Shown: positions 1-62,373 of the stretch, in pieces | Numbering within the stretch: the first letter of the stretch is position 1 | Layout: each line of letters starts with the position of its first letter | Origin: Octopus bimaculoides | Taxonomy: Eukaryota | Reading direction: 5' to 3' | Assembly (NCBI RefSeq): GCF_001194135.2 | Contig: NC_069000.1 | Span: 18,983,723-19,047,722 of the forward strand | Length of the DNA stretch: 64,000 bases | Position numbers and translations under genes: made by a program | Notes under the pieces: model-generated | Databases searched by the model: none | What the model was told of the DNA's origin: nothing | What the model saw: only the letters and a program-made list of their open reading frames with translations

Positions 1-252
1 GGTGGCGAACCATGCTGTACTCTTTCACCACAACTTTCTCTCACTCTTACTTCCTGTTTCTGTTGTGCCTGTAATTCAAAGAGTCAGCCTTGTCACACTG
101 TGTCACGTTGAATATCCCCGAGAACTATGTTAAGGGTACACGTATCTGTGGAGTGCTCAGCCACTTGCACATTAATTTCACGAGCAAGCTGTTCCGTTGA
201 TTGGATCAACTGGAACCCTCGTTGTCGTAAGTGACGGAGTGCCAACAACAAC
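1..252 (+). mobile_element. 3' portion of a SINE ending in a (CAA)n tail, truncated by the window edge
   Basis: Resembles an abundant octopus-type interspersed repeat (ggatcaactggaaccctcgttgtcgtaagtgacggagtgcc) followed by aacaacaac. Confidence 0.55.
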
Positions 253-284
253 AACGATATATATATATATATATATCAAAAAGC

Positions 285-511
285 CATAGGTTCATAAGGC
301 TGGTTTTCCAAATTCTGTGTATACTCTCCACCTGCCGGAGAGGATGCTGGTTGGTCTGTTGCAGGATTACGCATTTTCGCCAGCTGAGTGGACTGGAGCA
401 ATGTGAAATGAAGTACTTGTTCAAGAATATGTGTTGCCTTGTCCACAAATCAGAACAGCACAATCTTATAATCATGAGTGCAATACCCTGACCACTAAGC
501 CATACACCTGC
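285..511 (-). mobile_element. tRNA-derived CORE-type SINE
   Basis: The minus strand starts gcaggtgtatggcttagtggtcagggtattgcactc (A-box-like) and includes aagtacttcatttcacattgctccagtccactcagctgg. The same family occurs at 30885-31130 (+) and 19800-19945 (-). Confidence 0.7.
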
Positions 512-712
512 ATGCAGGCACACACACACACACACACCATCATTCTAACATACATGAATATATAATTTATCAATTGCAGGAAAGTTAAAGGATATGCAAA
601 TCATACAATATGTTGCAATATACAAAGTTTTATCACATTCTTTAAATGTTCATTATGAAATAAACAAAGTTCCAAAGAAATTTTTAAAATTGAAAGGACA
701 GTAATTCAATAC

Positions 713-876
713 CTAATTCCCAAACTAAATGGTCTATTTTTCTCACAAAACATGTGGCAATAGTTATAAAAGAAGCTATGAGAACATAGGATCAATAAAC
801 TGTAAACAGCTAAAGGCACCCAATGGTAGTCTGCTAAAGTACATGTGTGAAACCCCCTTAAGCATAGAAAACAACA
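713..876 (-). ncRNA. candidate host-transcript exon (164 nt)
   Basis: Acceptor ttttttctcctctctgatttag| and donor TAG|GTATTG around a GC-richer block in an AT-rich context. Confidence 0.35.
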
Positions 877-924
877 CTAAATCAGAGAGGAGAAAAAATA
901 TGGATATGAAGAAACTGTACTTAC

Positions 925-1052
925 TTTTAATTGAATTGCAGACACCGGCAGTACAATAAATTATATCAGTCCAGGTTAACAGCTGGTGAATAATAGTAGC
1001 ACTTGCTTCAAAAGAGGTAAAAAAAAGACAATGCTGGAAACATCCTGGTTTG
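925..1052 (-). ncRNA. candidate host-transcript exon (128 nt)
   Basis: Acceptor tagttctttccag| and donor AAA|GTAAGTA around a GC-richer block. Stop codons occur when it is joined in frame to the 3951-3888 exon. Confidence 0.35.
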
Positions 1053-2241
1053 CTGGAAAGAACTATATATATGTTTATATATATATAATCTTTTTTACCT
1101 CTGGAAAAGACTAATAGTTGCTTTGAATTGAAAATCAATGACAGACTTATGACGTAAAATGAAAAATAAACCTTTTACTCCTTAAATTCTTAACTAGACA
1201 AATTAAACAGTAATAAATAAATCAACTAAAATTAGTTTAAGTAAAACAGCTATGAAAATTAGCCAATTATTAAATAAACTAGGTATCAAATAAATAGCTT
1301 TTTTTTTTTTTTTAAATATAAATTTCACCATTTCCAAATCTATTATTTAGCAGAACTGTATAATGAAGTTGAAGATTACTTTAATAAAAGTAATTTGTTT
1401 AACATATTTTAGTATGGAATATCCAAGATCTTTGCCTTAATTTTGCAAAGGAATTATGTTCTAAAATGAAAAATTTACAATAATTTAAATTAATGCTTTT
1501 ACTATCAACAAATTTGAATAAAAATATTAATAGTACTGATAACAGAATAAAGTTTTCATTAAATTATAAAAATTTTGCAATTATTACAAACAAAAAATTT
1601 TAATTTATACAATTCTTTTCAATAAAATGGAAAAAAAAATTAGGGAGGAGAGGTTGGTAAAATTTCCATAAAAAGGGATTTTTAATTCTGTAATTAAAAA
1701 TAATTTAAATAAGATTATTGCTTAAAAATTAAAATTATAATCCAAGCACATTTATTCTTGCTAAATGAAAACTATTTTGAAGTAATAGTGAGAAATTTAA
1801 AACTTTAATGTAGCTGAATTTAATAAAATAAGAAGCCAATAAAGCAGTAACTTAGCAAACAGTGAAAAATAGTCAATGTTTCAATTATAGCTATTATAAT
1901 GTACAGAAAGATATTAAGTGTCATGATATAAATAAAAGTAATGTGAAAAAATAAATAAGCAAACATTGAAAACAATTTCATAATATTCATGATCATCTTT
2001 GCAAATATATAAAAAAAAAAATGACAAATATAAAAATAAATTTCTTTCATTAAATGCCAGCTAACAAATCTGACACAACCAAAAGCAGCCTCTACTCATT
2101 TGATTTTTATATATTTTAAGTTCAGGACAGGACTGCATGAGATTTGCCTGCAATTATTGTAACTGGTAGACGGATAAACAATGATGCATTCAGCGTTGCT
2201 GAAACGCCAGAATAGATGTGTTTAAGTGTTGCTCATTCATG

Positions 2242-2324
2242 CCCCAGGGAAAGCTAGAAGGTTGTACAGTTCTCCTTGAAATGGTGTATTTCTTAACTAT
2301 ACAACCTACTACCTCAGTCTGGGG
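2242..2324 (-). ncRNA. let-7: let-7 microRNA hairpin (mature 5p 2316-2295; 3p arm 2269-2248)
   Basis: Plus 2295-2316 aactatacaacctactacctca is the exact reverse complement of UGAGGUAGUAGGUUGUAUAGUU. The 3p arm CUGUACAACCUUCUAGCUUUCC pairs with it. The basal stem is CCCCAG/CUGGGG, the loop contains GGAG, and a CNNC motif (CAAC) lies about 17 nt downstream of the 3p end. Confidence 0.98.
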
Positions 2325-3611
2325 TCATAAACTTTTCTCCTCGTTGGCAGCTTAATATTTCACATATATGCAAGAATAGGGAAAGAGATTTTTTTTGACT
2401 TTATATAAAATTTCGGAGAGAAACGGGAGATGAAGAAAAATATGATCTATCTATTTGCACATAGACAATTAATGGTATAATCATACAATGGTGCTAATTA
2501 TAATTGACATGAACCAACACATTTTACCAAAATATATTTTTGGAAACAATTCATAAAACTTGTATGTTAACAGAATCTCTAATTTTTGCTAATTACTTAT
2601 AGGGAGATTAGAAAAATACAATAGAAATATATTTAACAAAGAAAATACAACAAATACACGATAATAATTTCACTTATAAAGTTTATTGATCAATAAATAA
2701 TGGTTATTATTTAATGTTATTTATTTAAAGCGAATTTCTTTAACATAGTGTATTCTGAGTATTGAAACTTTGAAATATTTCGATGAATTTTTTAATCCAT
2801 ATAATAATGACAAAAATCAATAGTTTTTTTTTTTTTAAATCCAAAGTTCTAAATTATTTAAAATATTACTTACACCTTATATTCCCAATATTGGTTCTTT
2901 TAATGATGATTATGATGATGATGATGATGACAGTAACAACAACAAAAACGCTTATTTGATATCTTAAATGTAATTATAAATAATATAGTTTAAAAAAATA
3001 ACTGAGAACGAATAAAATATAGCTAGAATATTGCTAGAATTAAATAATAAGGAACTAAATATCTAAAGCAATAATGTCTTGGTAAAAACTGCTATTAAAA
3101 GAAGAAAGAAAAAAACTACTAAAAGTTGTAACTGAATAAGTGGGAATTGAATAAAATAATAAGACAAACAGGCTAAAAATTTGAACAATGAACATGATTT
3201 TCAAAATACAAATGGGAAAATAAAAAAATAAAAAATTACATGAAAGAAAATAAACATCTAATTTAAATTTGTGAAAATGAATTAAGATGAAATTAAATAA
3301 CTCATATATTATTCAATCATGTTGTTTCATGTTGCACTTTAGATCCCTCCCTCAGTTTTTATCATCATTTCCAAAGAAAGTCATCCGTCTAAATGTTATG
3401 TGTATCTCAAGTCCTTAAGTATGATGTAAAGGCAATACTGTAAGTGGTTGGGGGACAGGAAATGTCTTTCTTGTTTCTTTTCCTCTATTTTTTTCTTTCT
3501 TTTCCTTCTAGTGCTCATCCAGTAGTACATTTACTGCCGATTAGACAGTAGCAGCTGTGTGGTCATTGACAGCGCATAAAATATAATACAAGACTACTAA
3601 TTTCACTTACC

Positions 3612-3687
3612 ATAGCGACACTGACCCATAAGCGTGAGCTTGTGACCCAACCTCAACACAAGTCCAGAGCTACGGGTTTGTGTAACC
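3612..3687 (-). ncRNA. mir-100: miR-100 (miR-10/99/100 family) hairpin; mature 5p AACCCGUAGCUCUGGACUUGUG at 3678-3657, 3p arm about 3642-3621
   Basis: 19/22 identity to canonical miR-100 AACCCGUAGAUCCGAACUUGUG with an intact seed. It folds with CACAAGCUCACGCUUAUGGGUC across a 12-nt loop and lies immediately upstream of let-7 on the same strand, the conserved cluster order. Confidence 0.93.
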
Positions 3688-3887
3688 AGGCCACGAACAC
3701 AAAAGGAAAAAGTAAAGGAGGTAGAGCCTTGGGAAATAGCAAACATAATGTGTTAAAACAAGAAACCAGTCTTCATTCATCTCATCTTTCTGGTGATTGT
3801 ATTTTAATTGCATACAGATTAAAAGGCTGCTTTTGAGATTTTCAAATACATAGTACAAGGTATATATTAGCAAGTAGGTATACTTAC

Positions 3888-3951
3888 CTGTAGGCTATGA
3901 ATAGTAATCATTTCATAGTAAGCCATAAACCAATAAAATGTTTTGTAGTTT
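3888..3951 (-). ncRNA. candidate exon of the miRNA host transcript (64 nt)
   Basis: Acceptor ttttctattgtttctttttctttatgtag| and a perfect donor CAG|GTAAGTA, about 210 nt upstream of mature miR-100. No recognisable protein. Confidence 0.5.
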
Positions 3952-4379
3952 CTACATAAAGAAAAAGAAACAATAGAAAATAACGTTGCGTAATATTGTT
4001 TCTATCATTTGAGAATAGTCTTAAAGCAGTAGAAAATAATTCATTTATTTATAATCAACAAATCATATTGATAATATTTTTTATTTACATAAAACAAATA
4101 AAACATGATATTAATTCAATCAGGGCACCTTTCCTTTTAAAGTATTTAAGAAAAGAAAAGAAAAAAATCTAAGGAATTTTCTTTTTGATTTATTATTAAT
4201 TTGGATATAAAAGCTAATATAAAAAAGTAATTAACAAGGTAAAGGGAAGACGGATATGATTTATTAGACAAAAAAAAAAAAATCATCATTAAATGCCTCT
4301 TCTGTCTCCAAAATATGGCAATCTGGAAATTGCTGGGATAACCATAAATGATGGTTTCTGGTTTAGGAAGAAGGTTAGC

Positions 4380-4560
4380 AATTTTGAGGAGATGGAGAAT
4401 AGTTGATACTACCAGTTCCAGTACTAGTACTTTATTTTATCAAACCCAGAGGAATAAAAAGTTAAGTTGACTTTGGCAAGATTTGAACTCTGAACATAAA
4501 AGAGCTGGAAAATAATGTCACTAAGCATTTTGTCTCAGGCTTTGACAATTCAGCCTACTC
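4380..4560 (-). mobile_element. degenerate tRNA-derived SINE of the ATT-tailed family
   Basis: Contains gatttgaactc (B-box complement) and actaagcattttgtc, shared with the arrays at 50-56 kb. Confidence 0.55.
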
Positions 4561-5119
4561 GTTACGTTATATAACCATAAATGATAACGAAGTATAAAGT
4601 TTGCTAACAACAAAAATAGATTTGCCAGCTGTCAAAACTGTCCAAATATTCACTACATTTTCAACTGTGTGTATATAGAGGTGTTTGCATGATCATTTGT
4701 GTTGAATAATTATTATATTGCAATTTATATTTGAGAAAAATTTATTAATCAGATTTAATCGTAACTTTTAAAAGAATTAAGCATTTAATTTTTCATTTAG
4801 GATCACTAATTTTGATTACTTTTTAAAGAAATATACCACTTAAGCAATGAATTATGCATAGTCTAAGTTCACTTTCCCTTTTTTTTAGATATTTAAACAG
4901 TGTGGAGATTGTGATGTCAAGTGAAAATTAAAATGGATTCTGTAAAATTGGTTGCTGAGTGAAAAGTACTATAAGCAGTCATAGTAGGTTATGGTTTGCA
5001 GTGCTGGAGTCATATAACGTGTAGGCTATTTTTTTTGTTATGTTCTTGGGCAAAGATGATGTTGAGGGAATAGCAACTAAATACAAAAAAATAAACTCCA
5101 TCACTATCAACATTATAAA

Positions 5120-6110
5120 TACACACACAAGCATGTGGTTAAAAAGTTTGCTTCCAAACCACACAAGGTTTTGGATTCAGTCTGATTGCATGCAGCCTTG
5201 GATAAGTGTCTTCTACAAAGCTCCAACCTTGTGAATGGATTTGGTAGACAGAAACTGAAAGCAGCTCAAACCGTGTGTAGTGCACACACACATGCATATA
5301 CAATGGACCCTTTGGTAATGGCTCTAATTCATTCCAGAAGCACAGAAACATATTTGTTACCATGTCAATTGAAATACGCGTATATATGAATAGCTTGTTA
5401 CAAATCTTCAGTGAATAAGTCTATATGCAATCCATTCCTGTAAGAATTCTGTCTGATTCATGAAAGCACAGAAAAGTGGACATTAAAATGAATAATAATA
5501 AAATTTGTTTAAAATCACGACAGCAACTTGGGTGGGTGGGGGTGTTAATCAATTATATAGATACCAGTACACTATTTCACTGAACCTGAAAGGATGGAAG
5601 GCAAAGATGACCTCAGTGGTAATTGAACTCAAACTGTCAAGACAAACAAAATGCTTAGTAGCATTTTGTCCAACACACTAACAGTTCTGTTTATAGCCTT
5701 TATTATTATTATTATTATTATAACAACAACCCTTTCTACTATAGGCACAAGGCCTGAGATTTTGTGGGGAGAGGTTAGTCGATTACATCAATCACATTGC
5801 TCAACTGGTATTTATTTAATGAATCCTAGAAAGATGGAAAGCAAAGTTGACCTCGGCAACACTTGAATTCAGAATGTAAAACTGGAGGAAATACCACTAA
5901 GCATTTTGTCTGGTACGCTAATGATTCAGGCATGGCTGACAGGCTGTGTGGATAAAATGTTTCTCAGCCACATGGCTCCAGATTCAGTCTTAGTGCATGG
6001 CACATTCAGCATGTTTTCTACAGGTCCAACCAAAGCCTTGTGAGGAGATTTGGTAGACAGAGACTTAAAGAAATATGTTGAATGTATGCATGTGCATGTG
6101 TCTATATGCA
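5120..6110. mobile_element. cluster of about four SINE copies (CORE-type + at 5120-5490 and 5928-6110; ATT-tailed type - at 5520-5690 and 5720-5925)
   Basis: Recurrent blocks aaagccttgtgag..gatttggtagacag and ccctttctactataggcacaaggcctgagattttg. Confidence 0.65.
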
Positions 6111-6279
6111 TACACAAACGGTGTCATTCATTTCTAGTCTTCTTTGTAAATATGTCCAGCCATGGGAAAACAAGTGAAGGTTGGTGACTGGGAAACAAAT
6201 TTATACAGACACAGTTATCCAGTAGTATTACATACAAAGGCTACGTGTAGCTGAAGATTTGACAATGCATTGTCATTAT

Positions 6280-6439
6280 CATCACCATTTTATGTCCATG
6301 TTCCATGCTGGCATGGGTTGGCTGGTTTGACAAGGAGCCAATAAATCAAGGATTGCATCATATATTTTGATTAATGTAATTTACATTATATAAATAGTTA
6401 TAATTTTTTTTTGTTAATAAAACATACATAAGAAACACA

Positions 6440-6477
<38 letters not shown>

Positions 6478-6630
6478 ACAATCTCCTTTCAGTTTCTGTC
6501 TAGCACTTCCAATTATACGGCTTTGGTTGGCCTGAGGTTATAGTAGAACATGCATGCCCAAAGTGCCACACAGTGGGGCTGAACCCAGAATCATGCAGTT
6601 GGAGAGCAAGCTTCTTTACCACACAGACAC
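6280..6630 (-). mobile_element. RTE-like tail fragment, (GT)n microsatellite (6443-6471) and CORE-type SINE
   Basis: ccatgctggcatgggttgg tail and the tagtagaacatgcatgcccaaagtgccacacagtggggctgaaccc block. Confidence 0.6.
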
Positions 6631-8119
6631 ACCTACACATTTGTAGTACATTCTCATAGATAACTATATGATAAAAATGCAATATAATAGATTGTTTTGC
6701 TAAACCAGATTATTGAAAAATAAATAGACTTATACTGAATGAAAGCTTAGGTTTCAACTGATTAATTTTCCATACAGCTCAATTTTAGTTATAGTGGAAC
6801 AGATTCAAAATAATTTGATATCAGCATATGGAAATACCATTAAAGTTTAGAAAAATGATTCATAATGTGTAAAAGACTTAACTAATCAAGGCTAAAGGTT
6901 TTGTTTTAAAACAGGAAAACTACAATTGTTTTGTGTTTTTTAAACATACAACTTCTGTAACCAAACTATCACCTGTAACATTTGATGCACCAACAAACAA
7001 TGAGAACTTTTAGATCTCAATGTATTCCATAAATTATACATATTTCAATTGTCTTTATTATTGATAAACATTTCATTTCTTGTGAAGTAGTTTCAACATT
7101 TTATTGCTTATTCTTGATATGTGTAATATTTTATAATCAAAATCTCCTCCCACACATAATTTGTATGACTTTTTGACCAGGTCATTTAAACATAATCTGG
7201 TGCGATGCTAAGATGCAGATAAGTGCTATGTGCTTTCTTATTCTAAATCAACTTAAGAGTCTAGCCTAATAAATCTGTTTAGTTTAGCTTCTCTAATCTT
7301 TTCATTTATTCACATTTATAGTTGCTCGCATCACTACCTCCACACGTACTCATGTATCTGCACAAGCACACTGAAGATATAACTGTGATTGGGTCAGTAA
7401 GTCTGGATAAACAGACTAAGTGGAAGAAAAACAGCATACCACCTAAATGTCTCTCACAAATGAAGCCCACAGATAAACTCTGAATGAAATATAATAAACA
7501 AATTTGCTTAAACTTTACTGAATGGCATATCTTAAATTATTATCAAGAATAGGCAAGATTTCATATTAAGGAAAATGCACACTATAAGTAATGTACCGAC
7601 ATGCAAGCAATAGTAAAACTGTGACTGGATTTTTGGTGTATTACTTATAGATAAAAAATATATGGTTGCAAATAAATAAAGCTTTCACAATAAATTTTCT
7701 AAATGATGATGCAAAAATTATTGGCACACATTGTTTTTAATTTTTTATTAAAAGCTAACAGAACAGACTATTAAAGTCCTGTTGCATCTGACAAAGTGAT
7801 TTTTATTTTGAGCAGGAGTCATACAAATAGGCTGTCTAGCTATACTTGCTCCTAAACCAGGTTTTTGCATAGGTCAAAACTGAATAATTTCTTGGTTCTT
7901 TACTGACTAATTTAGTTATATTTCTCTGGAACCTATTATAGTCTCCTTGTGACAATGTCAACTAGAACCACAAACACTAAGATAATCAGGAAATACCCTA
8001 TGCATGCCTAATCACTGCACCATTTGTTGATTCTATTGAATGTTATGCAGAGAGTTCTTCATCAGTTTGACATTTAGCAAGATACATTAAAATGTTGATG
8101 GTAAAGAAATTTCATATTG

Positions 8120-9952: not shown

Positions 9953-9999
9953 AAGTTGATAAAGGAGTGAATGTTGAAAATTCACTCCTTTATCAACTT
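9953..9999. repeat. perfect inverted repeat, 20-bp arms and 7-nt loop
   Basis: AAGTTGATAAAGGAGTGAAT gttgaaa ATTCACTCCTTTATCAACTT. Confidence 0.95.
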
Positions 10000-12601: not shown

Positions 12602-12960
12602 CTCTTTTTACTTGTTTCAGTCATTTGACTGCGGCCATGCTGGAGCACCGCCTTTAGTCGAGCAAATCGACCCCAGGACTTATTCTTTGTAAGCCTCGTA
12701 CTTATTCTATCGGTCTCTTTTGCCGATCCGCTAAGTTACGGGGGATGTAAACACACCAGCATCAGTTGTCAAGCGATGTNNNNNNNNNNTATATATACGA
12801 CAGGCTTCTTTCAGTTTCCGTCTACCAAATCCACTCACAAGGCTTTGGTTGGCCCGAGGCTATAGTAGAAGACACTTGCCCAAGGTGCCACGCAGTGGGA
12901 CTGAACCCATGACCATGTGGTTGGTAAGCAAACTACTTACCACTCAACCACTCCTGCGCC
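12602..12960 (-). mobile_element. young full-length CORE-type tRNA-derived SINE (contains a 10-N gap)
   Basis: Head ggcgcaggagtggttgagtggtaagtag, gcgtggcaccttgggcaagtgtcttctactatagcc core, tail atgactgaaacaagtaaaaagag; CpGs are retained. Confidence 0.85.
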
Positions 12961-14019
12961 TATATTTTTCTTCCTAATTTTTCTTCTTTACCTTCTTGTA
13001 ATTTTTTGTTGTTGCTGTTTTATTTTGTTCCTAAAAGCTTTTGAATATCTCTTCACTAATTGAAAGTAATAGGAATAGTTGTTTGATCAATTTATGACCA
13101 ATCCAACCCTTCTAAACATATCAGTAATTTTAAAAATAATTCTAGTTCACATGTTAGGAAAAATACTTCATTACCAGTATAGTTAAAAGTTACAAATATG
13201 ATATTTTCTAAGTATTGTCTCATTTTTCATCAGATATCATTAAGTTGTAAGAAAAATGTGAAAGAGACTGTAATGGTGATAATTAAATAAAAAGAAGTCA
13301 TGCAACTCCAAGGCACAGACTCCATCAAATATGTAGAAAAATAACCCTCCAGATACTAATTAGGTTATACACTTAATCTTTATTTAGCCTGATCCTTGTA
13401 AATATTCAAGAGAAGCCAGGCTAGCTCGTTAACATCAATAACACTCTACACTCCTTTGCTATTTTCTTTTCTCTGAAACAGACAGTCTTTACAATGACAA
13501 GGTCGTTTTTTTCCACCTAGTAGTCAGCCTTGCTTGGCTGCCTGCCTTATGTCTGATTATCATTCTGCATTAGACTGGACAGCCAGCCAGGTAGACTATT
13601 GATTTTCACCTGAAATATCACCTCTATGTGCATGACACATGGACACTGAGTACACTGACCTAGATAATGTACTCTTACCATGCTTAGCAAAACACTTATT
13701 ACCTAAACTGTAACATCAGATAAGAAAATACCTCAATTAATCAATTTATACATGTGTATGAATTTGAGTGCATGTATATGTATGCATGTGAACTCTCTCG
13801 CCTCTCACACACACACACACAATTCAAGCTATAAAGGTTTCAAATCATTTAAACAACTGAGAAGTCTTTCTTCAGAAAAAAAAACCATGTGGGNNNNNNN
13901 NNNNNNNNNNNNNNNNNNNNNNNNNNNNNNNNNNNNNNNNNNNNNNNNNNNNNNNNNNNNNNNNNNNNNNNNNNNNNNNNNNNNNNNNNGTGTGTGTGTG
14001 TGTGGGGGGGGGGTGATGA

Positions 14020-18779: not shown

Positions 18780-19945
18780 TCTCAGTTGCAAGGGCTCACA
18801 AGTCTAAAGTATTGTAAGTTACAAGGTGACCTCATTAGTGTTGGTGCAGCTAGGTACTGTAAAATGGTTGGCAAACCTAGAAGAGACAATGCACAATTGA
18901 GAAAAACTCTTTAGTCTTGCCAAAGGTATGACAACCTCTCTAGTGCTAGTGCCATAAAAGAAAATGCAGCCAGCACAGTTTGTAAAATGGATGATATTGG
19001 GAAGGATATACAACTACAGAAACCATGGCAAAACTGCGACACCTAAGCAAGAAGTGTACTACTGACCTATCTAGGAGGGTTGTAATTCTAATAAGAACTG
19101 ACTTGGATCTAGTCAAATCAGCTAACCCATACCAGTATAGAAAATGGATGTAAAATAATGATTATATATATCTATATATATATATAAATAAATATACACA
19201 CACATACATAGAGTTATGGCTGTAAATGCAGGTGGAACTGTGTGGTTGAGAAGACTACTTCTCAACTATGTGGTTTTGCAAATGTTTTCTATCTGAGACC
19301 TGAGCTAACCAAAATCTTGTGAGTAGATATAGTAGATGGAAACTGAAAGAAATTCATCGCACGTGTGTGTTGTCTTGACATCACATGACAACTCTACACA
19401 GGTACCACTGTCATACAAGTGATGTTATTTGTTTCCAGTTATCCATGGGAAATTATTAACTTGATTGCAAACAGGTGAGAGTTGGTGACAGGAAGGGCAT
19501 CTGGTTGTAGAAAAAATCTGCCTCAACAATTTCTGTAACCTATGTAAGCATGGGCCACAGAGATGATGATGATCACAAACACGATCACACATGCTTTACT
19601 TAGCTGTCATCTGCAAGCTAGTATGACTTGGTTGATTGTATCAGACTTCTGGTAATTTCTTCTGGTGTTTATGTAGTTACAAGCAGACACAGAACTCCCT
19701 CTTTCCCTCCTTCCCTTGTCCCAGTGGAACACTGAAGGTGTGACAGCTAATGGGGAAAAGGGTTGCACCAACACTTGATTGGCTAGTTTGTTGGTTGGTT
19801 GGATGGTACTCATTTTCAACTAAGTAGACTGGAGCAATATGAAATGATGTGCCTTGCCCAAGGATACAATTCAGTACCCAGTCAAAGGATTGAACCCACA
19901 ATCTTATGATCATGAATCCAAAACCCTAACCACTAAGCCATATTG
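18780..19945. mobile_element. cluster of an RTE-like tail (+), a CORE-type SINE (+, 19210-19570) and a CORE-type SINE (-, 19690-19945)
   Basis: Family blocks shared with other copies in the window. Confidence 0.55.
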
Positions 19946-30884: not shown

Positions 30885-31130
30885 AGTGTGTAGCTTAGTA
30901 GTTAGGGTGTTGCACTCATGGCTGTAAAATTATGGTTTTGATTTCTAGATCAAGTGATGTGTTGTGTTCATGAGCAAGACACTTCATTTCACATTGCTCC
31001 AGTCCACTCAGCTGATAAAAATGAGTAATCCTGCAACAGACTGGTTGTGCTGGTCAAGAGAGGGGTGGACATATACACCACAGAATCTGAGAAAGCAGCT
31101 TTATGAGCCTATGGCTTAAGAAGGACCTTT
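30885..31130 (+). mobile_element. CORE-type tRNA-derived SINE
   Basis: gtagcttagtagttagggtgttgcactc head and gagcaagacacttcatttcacattgctccagtccactcagctg. Confidence 0.7.
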
Positions 31131-32073: not shown

Positions 32074-32964
32074 TACAAAGAGGTACCCAAAAGAAACCGG
32101 AATTTTGCAATATTATTTTATTCACTTAGTTTTACATGTTTACATTTTTATCACCTTCAAAGTATTCTCCATTTAAAGCAATGCATCGGTCCAGACACGT
32201 TTCCCACTATTTGGAAGCAGTGTTGGAACTCTTGCAAAGTGATGCCTTTTAATGCCTCCATTGTTTTTTTCTTCACCTCAACCACATCTGTAAATTCCGT
32301 AGCACCAGCTTTTATCACCAGTGATAACCTTAAAAAAAAAAAGGTTCGGATCAACTTTCAGATGTTCTTTCAGTTCACGACACGCATTCAGTCCTGACTG
32401 CTTTTGATCTTCCGTGAGCAAGGGAGGCACAAATTTTGCTGCAACTCTTTTCATTCGCAAATCCTTGCTCAAAATTCGTTAGCTGGAGCTCCAGGACACA
32501 CCAGTCATATCAACAAGTTCATCAGTTGTTCCATGACGGTACTTCAAGATCAGTTCATGAAATTTTGTGATGTTTTCATTTGTTCGGTTGATGGTCGTCC
32601 CGATCAAAGTTGGACTTCATGTAACAAGTGACCATTCCTAAAGCGTAGAAACCACTCATAAACTTGTGTTTTGCTCATGACAGCGCCTTTGTAAGCTGTT
32701 TGAAGCATGAGAACTGTTTCGGCTGCTGTTTCCCCCCAGCAGAAAACAGAATTTCATGGAAGCACACTGTTTCTTTGTTTCAGCCGTCGCAAAAATTGAT
32801 GAACAGGGGAGAAGTACTGCAAAACAAAGACGCACTTTGTGACAGTATGACCCAACCTGATGGCACCGGTTGGCAAACCGATGCCTGAGGGTTGCTTCTA
32901 GTAGAAAAAGCTAGAACTACAAAAGGTTTGTCCCACAGAGAATGTTTCCGGTTACTTTTAGGTA
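32074..32964 (-). mobile_element. internally deleted mariner element with both TIRs
   Basis: TIRs tacccaaaagaaaccggaa (32084-32102) and ttccggttacttttaggta (32946-32964). Transposase pieces KFCFLLG..YEWF..SGRPST..LRMKRVAAKFVPPLLTEDQK..KVITGDKSWCYG are fused almost directly to C-terminal EVKKKTMEALKGITLQEFQHCF. Confidence 0.9.
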
Positions 32965-34450
32965 TATATTAGAAGCTACCAGTTCTAGTCTTACCAATAT
33001 CACTCCTCCTAACATAATACTGGAAAACAAACTTATATTTGTGTATCAAACTTATTAAAAGTAAGAAGAAAGAGAAAAAACAAACAAACTAAAAGTCCAA
33101 TTTAGCATATATAACACTTCAATAAATCACATGTAGCACAGTATCCTTGACTGGATAGCAAACCATAACCACAGCAAAGACTACACAGAGGAGTATACAA
33201 GACCTTGGACCAGATTAAAAATAAAAGCAGGGAGGTGTACCTATAGGTTACTGTCAAGCATTTTGCTGTCATAGGGCAGAGTTGATCGGAGCTACTCAAG
33301 AATAACAGTTCTACAGGGCAAAACTTCACTCGATGAGCAAACCCACTCAGAAACTCTTCAGTAACTGGACCATTGTAGAACCAAGGTCTTCAGTAACCAC
33401 TTTCACTGTAGCTACAATGAAATTTCCTTTTCTGAACTTGCCAATTTTCTCATCTGTTCCATTAATTCATCACAGCAACTAGAAAATTTACTTATATCAT
33501 GGATCTAGAAACCAAACAGCTAATTAGTTGCCAGCCATTTAGGTGAGAACTAAGGATAAAATTGAATTCTAATCACAAAAGAGAAACCTATGTTTCTGTT
33601 ATAAATTATATATTAGAAAGAAGGGCATACAAAAAAAAAAAGCTGCCTCTGTAAGAGCCAGTTTCCACTCAATAAAATAAATTATTTGTATAGAGAAAAT
33701 TCCTATGGTTTAGAACACAATGGTGTTTCTAAGTGACTCACTAATAGGAGTCTCGCTAAACAGTTGGCAACAGAATGTTGAAATAGTGCAGTCACAAATG
33801 TTATAAAATGTATGAGATGCAAAGAGGGAAGGAAAATATGATCATTATATATAGAGGGCAAACAAAAAAGCTATGTAAGTTTACTTAGCTAATTAATAAA
33901 AGAGAAAAAAAGTTTACAAATATTCTATGCAGTGATGTAAAAGTTTCAAGTGTTTCGATTGTGGTGTTTGGGAATGTATTAAGGGAAAAACTTAGATAAT
34001 GTAACGATAATTGCATGGATAAGGACATATAAAAACAAATGGATGGTGCATGGCGAATGCAAAAGTGTAAAGAAGTCAGAGAGAGTTGAGAATACTGGGG
34101 GTTCACAAACAGTACAATACATAGAGATAATAAATTATTGACTCTTCAAATATAACCTAAATGTAAAAATGGATGCTAAGCTGATGATAATGACATCCCA
34201 GGTGAAAATAATGGCTAATTAATGACTTAAAAAAAGGTTCATTATACATTTTTGAATGCAACTTTCAAAATCTCCTTCATAAATATCAAATGTATATAAA
34301 ACAAAAGCATAGGATGTGGAGAAAACAAAATGTAAGGAATGTTTTGAAAATATATTTGAAATTACTTATTTTAATGCCCCATTCAGTTGAAAGTTGAAAA
34401 AATAATTGAATAAATTACATTTTAGTTTGTATCAAGCAATATATTTATTT

Positions 34451-34838: not shown

Positions 34839-35006
34839 CTAATATGTATATTAGGTTCTACATAAACTAATGTGCAAGCTTTATAAAGATAGTTAAATTA
34901 TTTCTGTTACAAAATGACCCCTCATTATGAAGATGGCAAATGAATACTGATTGTTGTTGCAATATAGATTTCTAGCATAAAGGATGGTATGTACATACGT
35001 ACGTAC

Positions 35007-35082
35007 GTATGTATGTATGTATGTATGTATGTATGTATGTATGTATGTATGTATGTATGTATGTATGTATGTATGTATGTAT
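35007..35082. repeat. (GTAT)n microsatellite
   Basis: Seen directly. Confidence 0.95.
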
Positions 35083-35109
35083 AAGCCAGCTGAAATCACA
35101 GTTGTGACT

Positions 35110-44789: not shown

Positions 44790-45412
44790 CAGGGTACAAT
44801 GGGTAAATTGTCACCATTACAAACTTTTAATTTCGCGCATGCGCATTGTTTGTTTTTCATTTTGTCAACTACACAGTATAATAGGGTCAGTTGGGAACCG
44901 TCTGTGAGAAAAACAACACCATGACGCAATTCACTCTGACAGAAATTTGGAAACGACATGCTGTACTGCTTGGCATTAGGTGTCAATCTGAGGACACGTA
45001 TCAAGGGCGATAAAAATCAAGCATCTAGTCAACATCATGGCGTTTGAGTGATAATGTCACTGATGGTGACATTATGCCTCCATTCATCTTCCCACAGTCT
45101 CAGACTCAACATGAAGGCATACATCAAGTACCTGGAGGAGGTAGTGCAGCCCTGGGTCAAGAGGGTGGCTGCTGGAAGACCCTATGTCTGGCAACAGGAC
45201 TCTGTACCATGCTACAGAAGCAAGAGAACCCAGTCATGGCTGTCAGACAATTTCTGCGTTCACATAACCCCTGACATCTGGCCACCTAACCCCTCACACT
45301 TCAACCCTTTGATTATTATGTGTGGGGCGCAGTTGAGCGACAGATCAACAAAACTCCTTGTGACACCAAAGATGTACTGAAGGCAAGGATTATGGCAGCA
45401 TTCACCAACTTA
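44790..45412 (+). mobile_element. internally deleted Tc1/mariner-superfamily element, DD37D (maT-type); right end lost in the gap
   Basis: Starts TA|CAGGGT. Transposase pieces MTQFTLTEIWKRHAVLLG and YVWQQDSVPC..DIWPPNPSHFNP(L, 1-nt frameshift)DYYVWGAVER; 37 residues lie between the second and third Asp. Confidence 0.85.
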
Positions 45413-45809
45413 NNNNNNNNNNNNNNNNNNNNNNNNNNNNNNNNNNNNNNNNNNNNNNNNNNNNNNNNNNNNNNNNNNNNNNNNNNNNNNNNNNNNNNNN
45501 NNNNNNNNNNNNGAAAGAGAATATGTGTGTGAACTTCCATAATATAAAATCAACATGAGGAGTAATTTTGATTCCCTTTTCGTTTACTTTCTAGATCTTG
45601 TATTTAATTGTATTTTAAGGTGAATATTTTTGTTTTGAAAATTAGTATTCGTTTCATCATTAAGCACTAAGAAATTTGATAAGAATTAAATTACAAATAT
45701 TGTATGCATGCTATATTTTCTGATACTACCTGAGGTGGCTATAGTACATTTCTAAAGCTGCCCATCGTCTGACGGATAAGACACTAATTATACATAATAC
45801 AGAGAAGAA

Positions 45810-46200: not shown

Positions 46201-47079
46201 TACTGTACATGAGTTACTTGCCTCCTGAGAATAGCAGTTTACATGTTAAACATCAGTTATTTCCCTTGAATTTTGTCTTTCACTTTATCAAGGATTAAGA
46301 ACTCTGGAATTCAAAGACCCAAGGTACAAGACAGGAGCCTCTAGATATGTGGTTTGATTTTCATTTAAGTTAACTCTATTATTTCAATGAAACATATAGA
46401 ATATTAGATCAACCAAAAGAATTTATTTATGCAAATTATTTAACAATAAATTCCCCAACCAACATAAAAACAATAAAGGTAGAAGAGCATCTTAGTGAGA
46501 TGTCTTTGTAAAATATTTTAAAAGCTAGACAATTATGGTTAAAAACAACATTATGTATAAACTTTCAAATATTCACAATATATTTGAAATAAAATGCAGT
46601 CACAGCTATTTCAACTAAAACTATATGACAATAATAAATTTAATATAAAGATCAAGAAATTAAAACTATTTTAGCTTTTTTTCTATTATTTTAACAAAAA
46701 ATATTTCTATTTCTGTATTTTCTTTTCAGTAATAACCTTATATGGAGATGGCTTGAACTTTCATCAAGTGGCCATACAAATAATACTACTAAGATTAATG
46801 CGGTTCTAGTTATGTCAGTCTAAAGAGACACTGTATCTATAAAATCAGTTTAAGCAACAAGATTTTTGTATAATAAAAGCTAAAATACATTTCCATAAAA
46901 AATTTCCCTAAAAAAATTTGTCTCTAAAAATCTACAAATTAAATAGTTGTGTATTTCAGAATTGCAAAAAAGAAAGAAAAAGCATTCTCAGAGTTTATAA
47001 ACAGTATGATATTGTTATGCTATTTGACAGTTGAAACCAATACAGATGTATCAATGAAAGAATATTTTATACATATATA

Positions 47080-47135
<56 letters not shown>

Positions 47136-47138
<3 letters not shown>

Positions 47139-50282: not shown

Positions 50283-51347
50283 CATTAAAAAGACAGCAAG
50301 CTGGCAGAATCGGTAGCACGTTGGAAAAAATGCTTAGCGGTATTTCGTCTGTCTTTATGTTCTAAGTTCAAATTCCGCTGAGGTTGACTTTGCCTTTCAT
50401 CCTTTTGGAATTGATAAAATAAATACCAATTACACACTAGGGTCAATGTAATTGACTTATCCCCTCCCTACAAATTTCAATCCTTGTGCTTTTAGTAGAA
50501 AGGATTTTTATCATTATTATTGTTAAAGCAGTGAGCTGGCAGAACCGTTAGCACGCAAGGTGAAATGCTTAGTGGTATTTCATCAGCCGCTATGTTCTGA
50601 GTTCAAATTCTGCCAAGGTCGACTTTGCCTTTCATCCTTTTGAGGTTGATGAAATAAGTATCAGTTATGCACTGGGGTTGATGCAATTGGCTTCATCCCT
50701 TCCTCCAAATTTGAGGCCTTGTGCTTCCAGGAGAATTATTATTATTATTAAGGCGGTGATCTAACAGAATCGTTAGCACACCAGGCAAAATGCTTAGTGG
50801 CATTTCATCTGTCATTATGACCTGAGTTCAAATTCCGCCAAGGTAGATTTTGCCTTTCATCTTTTTGGGGTTGATGAAATAAGTACCAGTTATGCACTGA
50901 GATTGATGTAAAATTTCATGCCCCAAAATTTTATGCCTTGTGTCTCCAGTAGAAAGGATTGTTATTGTTATTATTATTATTANNNNNNNNNNNNNNNNNN
51001 NNNNNNNNNNNNNNNNNNNNNNNNNNNNNNNNNNNNNNNNNNNNNNNNNNNNNNNNNNNNNNNNNNNNNNNNNNCCCACCAAAATTTCAGGCCTTGTGCC
51101 TAAAATAAAAAGGAGTATTATTATAATTGTTATCATTATTATTATTATTAAGGTGGTGAGCTGGCAGAATTGTTAGCAGGCCAAAATGATTGACAGTATT
51201 TTGTTTGTCTTCACATCCTCAGTTCAACTTGCCTTTCATCGTTTCAGGGTCAATAAAATAAGAACCAGTTGAGGGCTAGGGTCAATGTAATCAACTATAC
51301 CCCTCCCCAAATTTCAGGCCTTGTGCCTTTAGTAGAAAGGATTGTTA

Positions 51348-60043: not shown

Positions 60044-60977
60044 NNNNNNNNNNNNNNNNNNNNNNNNNNNNNNNNNNNNNNNNNNNNNNNNNNNNNNNNN
60101 NNNNNNNNNNNNNNNNNNNNNNNNNNNNNNNNNNNNNNNNNNNNNNNNNATGCACACACACAAACATACCCACCTACTATGATTTTTTTTTTTTATCTTG
60201 TAAAAAGAAAAATTACACGGTAGGGCTTCACATAATATAATTAGAAATAAATTACTGCAAAAAGAACCTTATTAATCTAGAATTGATAAGCGATAAATAT
60301 TACATGTAGTTAAAAAAGCAATGTGAGACAATATCAGTTAGAATTATACATCACCAATGAACAGCTTTTAAATTTCCTATTACATAGCCATCGTTGCAGA
60401 TATCTCGATTCAGTTGTTCTACAGAGGTCGTATATGCGCATGCGTTTTTGCCACACCACTCCTACCAGTTTCGAGAAGACTACATATTCTGTGTGCTGAA
60501 ATCCACATGGAAGAAATAAAGTTGAAATATAAGTACAAATTCTCATAGGAAATTTGTCATTAATAATTAAAAGTTTGCTGAATACTATAACTATCTGTCA
60601 ATTAGCACACTAACCTACTGAATCCTCTATGCAATCATTTAAAAAGTCTGCTTGCTATAAAGTACATACTTCACATTGTTTCAGCTCTACAAATATCAAT
60701 TTAATTCCCACCTCACTTCCAAAGTCTTCTGTTTTAACTTAAATTGCTTTTCATTTTGATTTTCTTTTTAAGAAAAAACTCGCTTGGATTAACATTCAAA
60801 GATAATGTAGGAAAAAAAAAACGAAACAAAAAACAGCAATCAATTCTGATTAAATATGTACAAAATCAACTTGGCTATGAAGTAATAGTTCTATTACTTA
60901 AGAGCTTTGTACTGGTTTCATAAAACCTGAAGAGAGTAAAAGCAAGTTGTTGCCCTTACCTGCCAGCAGAGCACACA

Positions 60978-61205
60978 TGACCCAGACAGGAATTTTAGTG
61001 AGTTGCAGAGAGTATGCCAGATAGTAAAGATCTTACCCATGACCTCAATGACTTATTCCCATTGCAATACTAAGCAGTGAAAAAGAAACAAAACTGACGC
61101 CTGCTTCTTTCTGTAATAAAATGACATGGTCTGATAAGTGACCTGAAGGAGGAAACTACCTATACCTTGTAAGTGTGTGCGTGTCTATATATATATGTGT
61201 GCGTG

Positions 61206-61249
<44 letters not shown>

Positions 61250-62373
61250 TACACATATATATATATACATATATATACATATATAACAGACAGACACACT
61301 CTCATGCATAATTACTCCGTGTACATGAGAAGGGGAACCCCGCTGTCTCATTTTACATACATTAAACACTATGCCCACATTTTGGCAATGTGGTTGCGCA
61401 GTCACCGGCTTCTATATAGCTACGCATGCGCTATGTTATATTTCTTAGGATGTACAGTCATCGTCGACAGAAATGAAAGGAGTACCTCATGTCAGGTCAC
61501 TAAAAAGATTAAGATTCTGTCCCGCCATCTTTGTACCACATGGTATATTCAACAATATATTAAATACAACAATAGACCAGAAAAAAATAATTACATGTGG
61601 CAATAATGAGTAAAGAAGATGACTTCTATTTGAAAATTACATCAAAGGATTTTATAGCTGTTTTTAACAGAAAGGGAGGGAAGTACCACAAATCAATGCA
61701 CCAAGCACAAGCTATTTCCATATTAAAAACAAAAATAATATTCAAATATAATACATTTTTTTCAGAATGGAACATACAAGAGGTATGCCATTTCATTAAA
61801 GTTTTTTTTTTTTTAAAAACCCTACCCAGTAACAAATGAAATATCATGACAGTAAGTAACTGAATTGAGTTCTATTATTATCATTAAGAGGCATAAAAGG
61901 TAGCTAATATACAGTAAACGATTCACATTCAAAAAGGGAGAAGATGGCAAAAGAGAGATGGAGATATTATGAAACAGCGATGTAATAAATTTCACAACAA
62001 AATGTTACATCGGCAATGATTAGGTAATTTCAAACAAAGCAACAAAAAAGGTATTGAGTAATCTGTAAAAGAATATAGATCATTATCAAAACAGAATTAA
62101 ATATGCAGACAGTCATGGGTTTACATTTAAGTCTGCCTCGCCTCCATCTTTTTTAGTAGTCAAATGCTGTGCTTAGCTGCTACTTACCACACAGTGGCAA
62201 CAATTTTATAGGCATAATTCAACAGGGCCTTTCGTTAGCTGATGCTGCTGCAGTGATTACAAGGTAACAATCCATTAGGTCATACGTAACATGTCTGGTG
62301 AACCCAATCTGCGGGGACCACTTTGCCTAAGTCCTTGCCACGGGCTAGTTTACAGGTTTAACTAATCTGACCT
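60978..62373. promoter_or_regulatory. cluster of RGGTCA nuclear-receptor half-sites including a DR3-like element
   Basis: TGACCC 60978, TGACCTcaaTGACTT 61040-61054, TGACCT 61139, AGGTCA 61494, AGGTCA 62277, TGACCT 62368. Confidence 0.3.
61037..61069 (-). ncRNA. candidate non-coding exon with alternative donors (61037 or 60960)
   Basis: Acceptor ttttgtttctttttcactgcttag|; donors TGG|GTAAGA and CAG|GTAAGG. All three frames of the long form contain stops. Confidence 0.3.

Follow-up and report, generated by a model that had tools for sequence, protein, structure and literature searches.

The miR-100/let-7 cluster serves in textbooks as a marker both for bilaterian genomes and for the control of developmental timing, and corresponds to the let-7-Complex of Drosophila and to the human MIR100HG and MIR99AHG loci. 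Its miR-100 member is the oldest animal microRNA and otherwise near-invariant; in Rfam it is covered by the mir-10 family (RF00104), together with miR-10 and miR-99. According to Hertel et al. (2012; PMC3384580), most protostome clades carry one tightly linked mir-100/let-7/mir-125 cluster, and the mollusc Lottia lacks mir-125. For one let-7/mir-125 precursor, a preprint (10.1101/2024.12.01.626237) validated an intron; it also predicted introns in 63 LET-7/MIR-100/MIR-125 clusters from 43 species. For Octopus vulgaris, Zolotarov et al. (2022; PMC9699675) list Ovu-Let-7 and Ovu-Mir-10-P2 and give for the latter the target 8-mer TACGGGTA, which corresponds to the seed of the miR-100 described below. 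If the locus described below is from an octopus, both of its miRNA genes are probably catalogued already.

We analysed a stretch of 64 kb (the window) in which a first-pass annotation had placed two pre-miRNA hairpins on the minus strand, miR-100 and then let-7, at a distance of about 1.3 kb. This arrangement was borne out: a miR-100-type hairpin lies upstream of let-7, both are on the minus strand, and 1362 nt separate their 5p starts. Metagenome contigs provided 15 independent loci in which miR-100 is followed by let-7 on the same strand, 112-1093 nt downstream. Because order, strand and kilobase-scale spacing are the same in these 15 loci, the window matches the conserved cluster, in agreement with the survey of protostome clades (PMC3384580). 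The window spacing is larger than that of any of the 15 comparators and far shorter than that of tetrapod clusters. Between the two hairpins lies an AT-rich spacer (2323-3614, minus strand) that contains no repeat found elsewhere in the window, no Rfam match and no further strong hairpin. Ranked by stability, both belong to the top five single hairpins on the minus strand of the nearest 12 kb. On these grounds, we regard the locus as very probably a genuine, conserved bilaterian miR-100/let-7 cluster.

The wider proposal of a conserved miR-100/let-7/miR-125 cluster holds for the first two members in order, strand and spacing; the third was not found in the window. Searches allowing up to three mismatches returned no miR-125 anywhere in the window, CCCTGAGA was absent as well, and positions 1-8000 gave no Rfam match to lin-4/mir-125. 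Two CCCTGAG 7-mers are present in the window, which is no more than chance predicts; both are far off, and none lies on the relevant stretch. Among the 15 comparator loci, miR-125 is also present in four, at 1124-2590 nt from miR-100, and it is missing in five of the nine that have let-7 and at least 2 kb downstream of miR-100. Because the window ends 2243 nt downstream of the let-7 hairpin and these five comparators lack miR-125 too, its absence means nothing firm; with no miR-125 within 2.2 kb downstream, the window resembles Lottia (PMC3384580). Two candidate hairpins downstream of let-7, at 166-245 and 321-400 on the minus strand, were rejected as a third miRNA: neither has a known seed, and the second overlaps a repeat family. 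This second hairpin is stable and could be mistaken for a miRNA, and is explained by the short interspersed repeat family; short interspersed repeats of 67-80% identity lie at 350-507, 19790-19942 and 30886-31041.

The let-7 member agrees with its family in all that is of note. The 22-mer TGAGGTAGTAGGTTGTATAGTT occurs as a single copy in the window, at 2295-2316 on the minus strand, and its mature product, let-7-5p (UGAGGUAGUAGGUUGUAUAGUU), matches let-7 exactly over 22 of 22 nt. In dinucleotide-preserving shuffles of the window, the expected number of matches to this 22-mer was 0.00. The Rfam let-7 model (RF00027) scored 61 bits at 2244-2322 on the minus strand, above its gathering score of 53.5, and let-7 is the one family that the whole window yields at curated Rfam thresholds. 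The same region, 2244-2322, folds into a single long pre-let-7 hairpin with the mature sequence on its 5' arm (-43.4 kcal/mol, z -6.58), and none of 200 shuffles folded as well. The antisense strand reached only -29.9 kcal/mol, weaker than the sense strand. On the plus strand, Rfam mir-3596 scored 69.6 bits (gathering score 96); this match was dismissed as the antisense of let-7: the two families belong to the same clan, and the sense strand folds better. Taken by itself, this let-7 is almost certainly genuine.

Assuming 2-nt 3' overhangs, the fold places the ends of pre-let-7 at 2248-2316 and those of pre-miR-100 at 3621-3678, identical to the coordinates of the first-pass annotation, and it predicts for each the partner arm that had been claimed. 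For let-7, the predicted 3p arm is CUGUACAACCUUCUAGCUUUCC (2248-2269, minus strand), and the seed of the mature 5p arm is GAGGUAG. Two bases 5' of the 3p arm, the terminal loop carries GGAG (2272-2275, minus strand), in alignment with the GGag that is conserved in the Rfam consensus for let-7. This motif serves as the LIN28 zinc-knuckle site in vertebrates, and control of this let-7 by LIN28 through the loop GGAG is possible by analogy. A CNNC motif noted earlier was also found, as CAAC at 2228-2231 on the minus strand; reading along that strand it runs from 2231 to 2228, 17-20 nt past the predicted 3' Drosha cut. Because a rough estimate from base composition puts the chance of a CNNC at this distance at about 7%, the motif adds little and by itself is weak evidence. 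Compared with the let-7 family (RF00027; MirGeneDB LET-7, including Ovu-Let-7 of Octopus vulgaris), the 5p arm is identical over 22 nt, and the hairpin likewise has two family-typical single mismatches in its stem in addition to the loop GGAG. Its loop and 3p arm differ from those of each comparator, as is usual between lineages.

The claim that both mature sequences are present is exact only for let-7, because the miR-100 match uses all three of the mismatches allowed. With up to three mismatches allowed, canonical miR-100 matched the window only once, at the 22-mer AACCCGTAGCTCTGGACTTGTG (3657-3678, minus strand), and shuffles of the window gave 0.00 expected matches to the miR-100 22-mer as well. 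The predicted miR-100-5p, AACCCGUAGCUCUGGACUUGUG, agrees with the canonical sequence at 19 of 22 positions. Positions 1-9 are intact, including the seed ACCCGUA at positions 2-8 (the arm begins AACCCGUAG... at 3678, minus strand), and the differences are A10C, C13U and A15G. We assign the hairpin (3615-3685, minus strand) to the MIR-10 family, as Mir-10-P2-like, from its Rfam match, fold and alignment. With permissive thresholds, RF00104 matched 3615-3685 over the full model length (1-74). Its 43.7 bits fall just short of the gathering score (47.5), at an E value of 2.5e-8 for 8 kb and 2e-7 for the full 64 kb, and the shortfall arises at the substituted positions.

Folding supported this second hairpin less strongly than let-7: it reached -26.5 kcal/mol with z -2.1, six of 200 shuffles were as good, and the centroid structure leaves the mid-stem open. 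Those comparator miR-100 hairpins that fold within the extracted 74 nt range from -21.7 to -40.2 kcal/mol, and the window copy, cut to the same 74-nt span, lies at -25.1 kcal/mol. The predicted miR-100-3p, CAAGCUCACGCUUAUGGGUCAG (3621-3642, minus strand), aligns with the 3' arms of the comparators and shares their start, CAAGCU. No CNNC was found at the expected distance past the miR-100 Drosha cut. With miR-100/miR-99 (MirGeneDB Mir-10-P2, including Ovu-Mir-10-P2; RF00104), the window copy thus has in common the seed, the mature sequence on the 5' arm, the 3p start and the place upstream of let-7 on the same strand; it differs at A10C, C13U and A15G, in matching changes of the 3' arm, and in scoring below the Rfam gathering score. 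The miR-100-type hairpin is likely to be processed.

Following the established pathway, a long non-coding primary transcript of the minus strand would carry the miR-100-type hairpin and, about 1.3 kb on, the let-7 hairpin. Each hairpin would be cropped by Drosha/DGCR8 at a distance of approximately one helical turn above the basal junction, and the loops would be removed by Dicer. The 5' arms would then enter Argonaute as guides of about 22 nt, with the seeds ACCCGUA (miR-100) and GAGGUAG (let-7). We infer transcription, processing sites, arm choice and a role in developmental timing from what is established for this pathway and for the cluster. By the same analogy, the two hairpins are probably co-transcribed.

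The cluster is an ordinary one of the textbook kind; the three base changes outside the miR-100 seed are its sole unusual point. According to Wolter et al. (2017; PMC5204344), the evolutionary hotspot of mature miRNAs usually lies at positions 9-12, and conservation outside the seed is highest at positions 13-15; this makes the changes at 13 and 15 the unusual ones. A metagenome scan in which positions 10, 13 and 15 were left free returned 41 loci. Thirty-nine of them are canonical at these positions, and all 39 are unlike the window. The other two (L016, 1210-1231; L028, 939-960) share the miR-100-like 22-mer AACCCGTAGCTCCGCACTTGTG with A10C and A15C; both are GC-rich and form no hairpin, and we discarded them as probably a chance match in microbial DNA. 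The exact miR-100 22-mer of the window was absent from the scanned metagenome contigs and was not found in the literature searched, where the lone match to the variant 22-mer proved to be an unrelated fish primer. Spurious ORFs that lie close to the hairpins or overlap them gave no record of orthologous loci when looked up by exact sequence, and a protein-word search with stop-free translations across each hairpin gave no orthologous-locus candidates.

To see how the stem accommodates these changes, we counted pairs of the family stem in an alignment of 15 miR-100 hairpins, i.e. the window and 14 comparators. In register, 89.3% of the cells are paired, compared with 28-40% (maximum 40.3%) when the partner is slid by 1-3 columns. 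The only double-sided change of the alignment belongs to the window: pair 21-59, to which mature position 13 contributes, is U-A there, against C-G in ten of the rows. For pair 23-57 (position 15), twelve rows show A-U, and only the window shows G-U. Pair 18-62 (position 10) of the window does not form in the family register and is kept only in the minimum-energy fold, where a 1-nt bulge lets C10 pair with a G. Because the changes in the partner arm match those in the mature arm (C-G to U-A, A-U to G-U), the miR-100 hairpin of the window looks maintained rather than decaying. The other arm accommodates all three substitutions, as selection for a processable hairpin predicts and unlike neutral decay.

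Two other readings of the hairpins themselves have to be weighed against a maintained cluster. That both matches are chance resemblances in non-coding DNA has a negligible probability. Nothing speaks for it except the sub-threshold Rfam score of the miR-100 hairpin, and it is effectively refuted by the Rfam matches, by shuffles with 0.00 expected matches per 22-mer, and by the order of the comparator loci: each mature sequence occupies the 5' arm of a hairpin, and the two share one strand and the order seen in 15 animal loci. Alternatively, let-7 may be functional and the miR-100-type hairpin a decaying or functionally shifted copy, whose non-seed half has drifted and which is processed poorly or not at all. 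Such a copy could well carry three substitutions in its mature arm where 39 of 41 metagenome matches are canonical and the other two lack a hairpin, and the Rfam mir-10 score under the gathering score, the fold z of only -2.1, the open mid-stem of the centroid and the missing downstream CNNC would all fit. Decay would not, however, be expected to alter the 3' arm in a way that preserves pairing at positions 13 and 15 and, through a 1-nt bulge, at position 10. Moreover, the mature arm retains its seed and agrees with canonical miR-100 at 19 of 22 positions, the predicted 3p opens with CAAGCU like those of the comparators, the hairpin energy lies inside the comparator range, and the syntenic place upstream of let-7 is the orthologous one. 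We therefore consider a decaying copy improbable and retain the maintained miR-100-type hairpin as the better reading.

A third alternative accepts both hairpins as real miRNA genes and concerns their common precursor. On the minus strand, a consensus 5' splice site stands on either side of the miR-100 hairpin. The first, CAG/GTAAGT at 3882-3890 (GT at 3887), lies about 200 nt upstream of the hairpin; the second, ATG/GTAAGT at 3605-3613 (GT at 3610), lies 11 nt past the predicted 3' Drosha cut. They are putative donors from their match to the consensus, and they account for two of only five GGTAAGT on the minus strand in the whole 64 kb. A strong pyrimidine-rich acceptor candidate was found at about 3092 with a home-made score. 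These elements hint at a spliced host transcript in which the miR-100 hairpin would end a small exon. Because a consensus donor sits between the hairpins, a single unspliced precursor is not assured, and the donor 3' of miR-100, or separate promoters, could uncouple the output of the two genes; the validated and predicted introns of such clusters (10.1101/2024.12.01.626237) lend this some plausibility. On the other side, the splice sites are sequence matches in AT-rich DNA, the acceptor score is home-made, and among the non-duplicate comparators only one (L005) has a donor nearby right after miR-100, all others lacking it. Splicing of the precursor is also compatible with co-transcription, so that uncoupling is as much a refinement of the best explanation as a rival to it. 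On balance, we judge an uncoupled output unlikely, clearly less so than a decaying miR-100 copy, and keep one common primary transcript as the preferred model.

The surroundings of the cluster are poor in other features. The window is AT-rich (28-39% GC) with many microsatellites, and because it contains five runs of N (12780-12789, 13894-13989, 45413-45512, 50983-51074 and 60044-60149), it represents a gapped draft assembly. A tRNA scan of the window found none, the longest ORF is at most 143 aa, and a Pfam scan of the ten most protein-like stop-free stretches of the window returned no family; the longest stop-free stretches look like decayed repeats, and short exons are possible. The first-pass suggestion that the cluster probably accounts for the lack of protein genes in these 64 kb thus found no support. 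One such stretch (45048-45377, plus strand; 110 aa), beside an assembly gap, resembles a decayed transposase without a Pfam match, and its best database match is a predicted Octopus bimaculoides protein with 66% identity. This single match points to an octopus-like genome, and the window is probably of cephalopod origin. By eye, stop-free stretches at 32160-32968 on the minus strand resemble the N-terminal part of mariner-type transposases; the three of them that were scanned gave nothing in Pfam at E<=0.01.

The approximately 3.9 kb that hold both hairpins (508-4422) have no repeat copies elsewhere in the window. Outside this segment, a repeat at 5567-5929 has more than 20 partial copies at 45.8-56.6 kb, a family at 67-80% identity. 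The most stable hairpin of the first 12 kb, at 9953-9999 (both strands; AAGTTGATAAAGGAGTGAAT ... ATTCACTCCTTTATCAACTT), is an inverted repeat whose 20-bp arms pair perfectly around a 7-nt loop; it occurs once in the window and may represent the end of a transposon, a recent inverted duplication or a hairpin RNA gene of recent origin. Sub-threshold Rfam matches to mir-297, mir-466, mir-3149, mir-3688 and mir-5014 on both strands (61168-61299, 34983-35090, 47069-47138 and others) were set aside as low-complexity artefacts of TG, TA and CATA microsatellites, as was a sub-threshold match to SCARNA7 in a TG/TA microsatellite. A scan for bacterial promoters and terminators differed little from shuffles (44 promoter-like sites against 34.3 ± 6.8) and is inapplicable to an animal genome.

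ORF tracks miss non-coding genes such as these two, which provide an anchor in 64 kb of repeat-rich and otherwise featureless DNA. New biology would come from the cluster only if the diverged non-seed half of miR-100 or the flanking splice donors hold up. The three substitutions would leave seed targeting unchanged; two of them fall in the 13-16 supplementary-pairing region and could alter 3'-supplementary pairing. It is conceivable, though rather doubtful, that this lineage has changed miR-100 at positions 10, 13 and 15 with the partner arm co-evolving, and that in addition the hairpin ends a small exon whose donor lies 11 nt past the Drosha cut. If so, the 3'-supplementary pairing of miR-100 with its targets would have shifted in a lineage-specific manner, and cropping of miR-100 would compete with splicing towards let-7, such that the output of the two miRNAs could be uncoupled.
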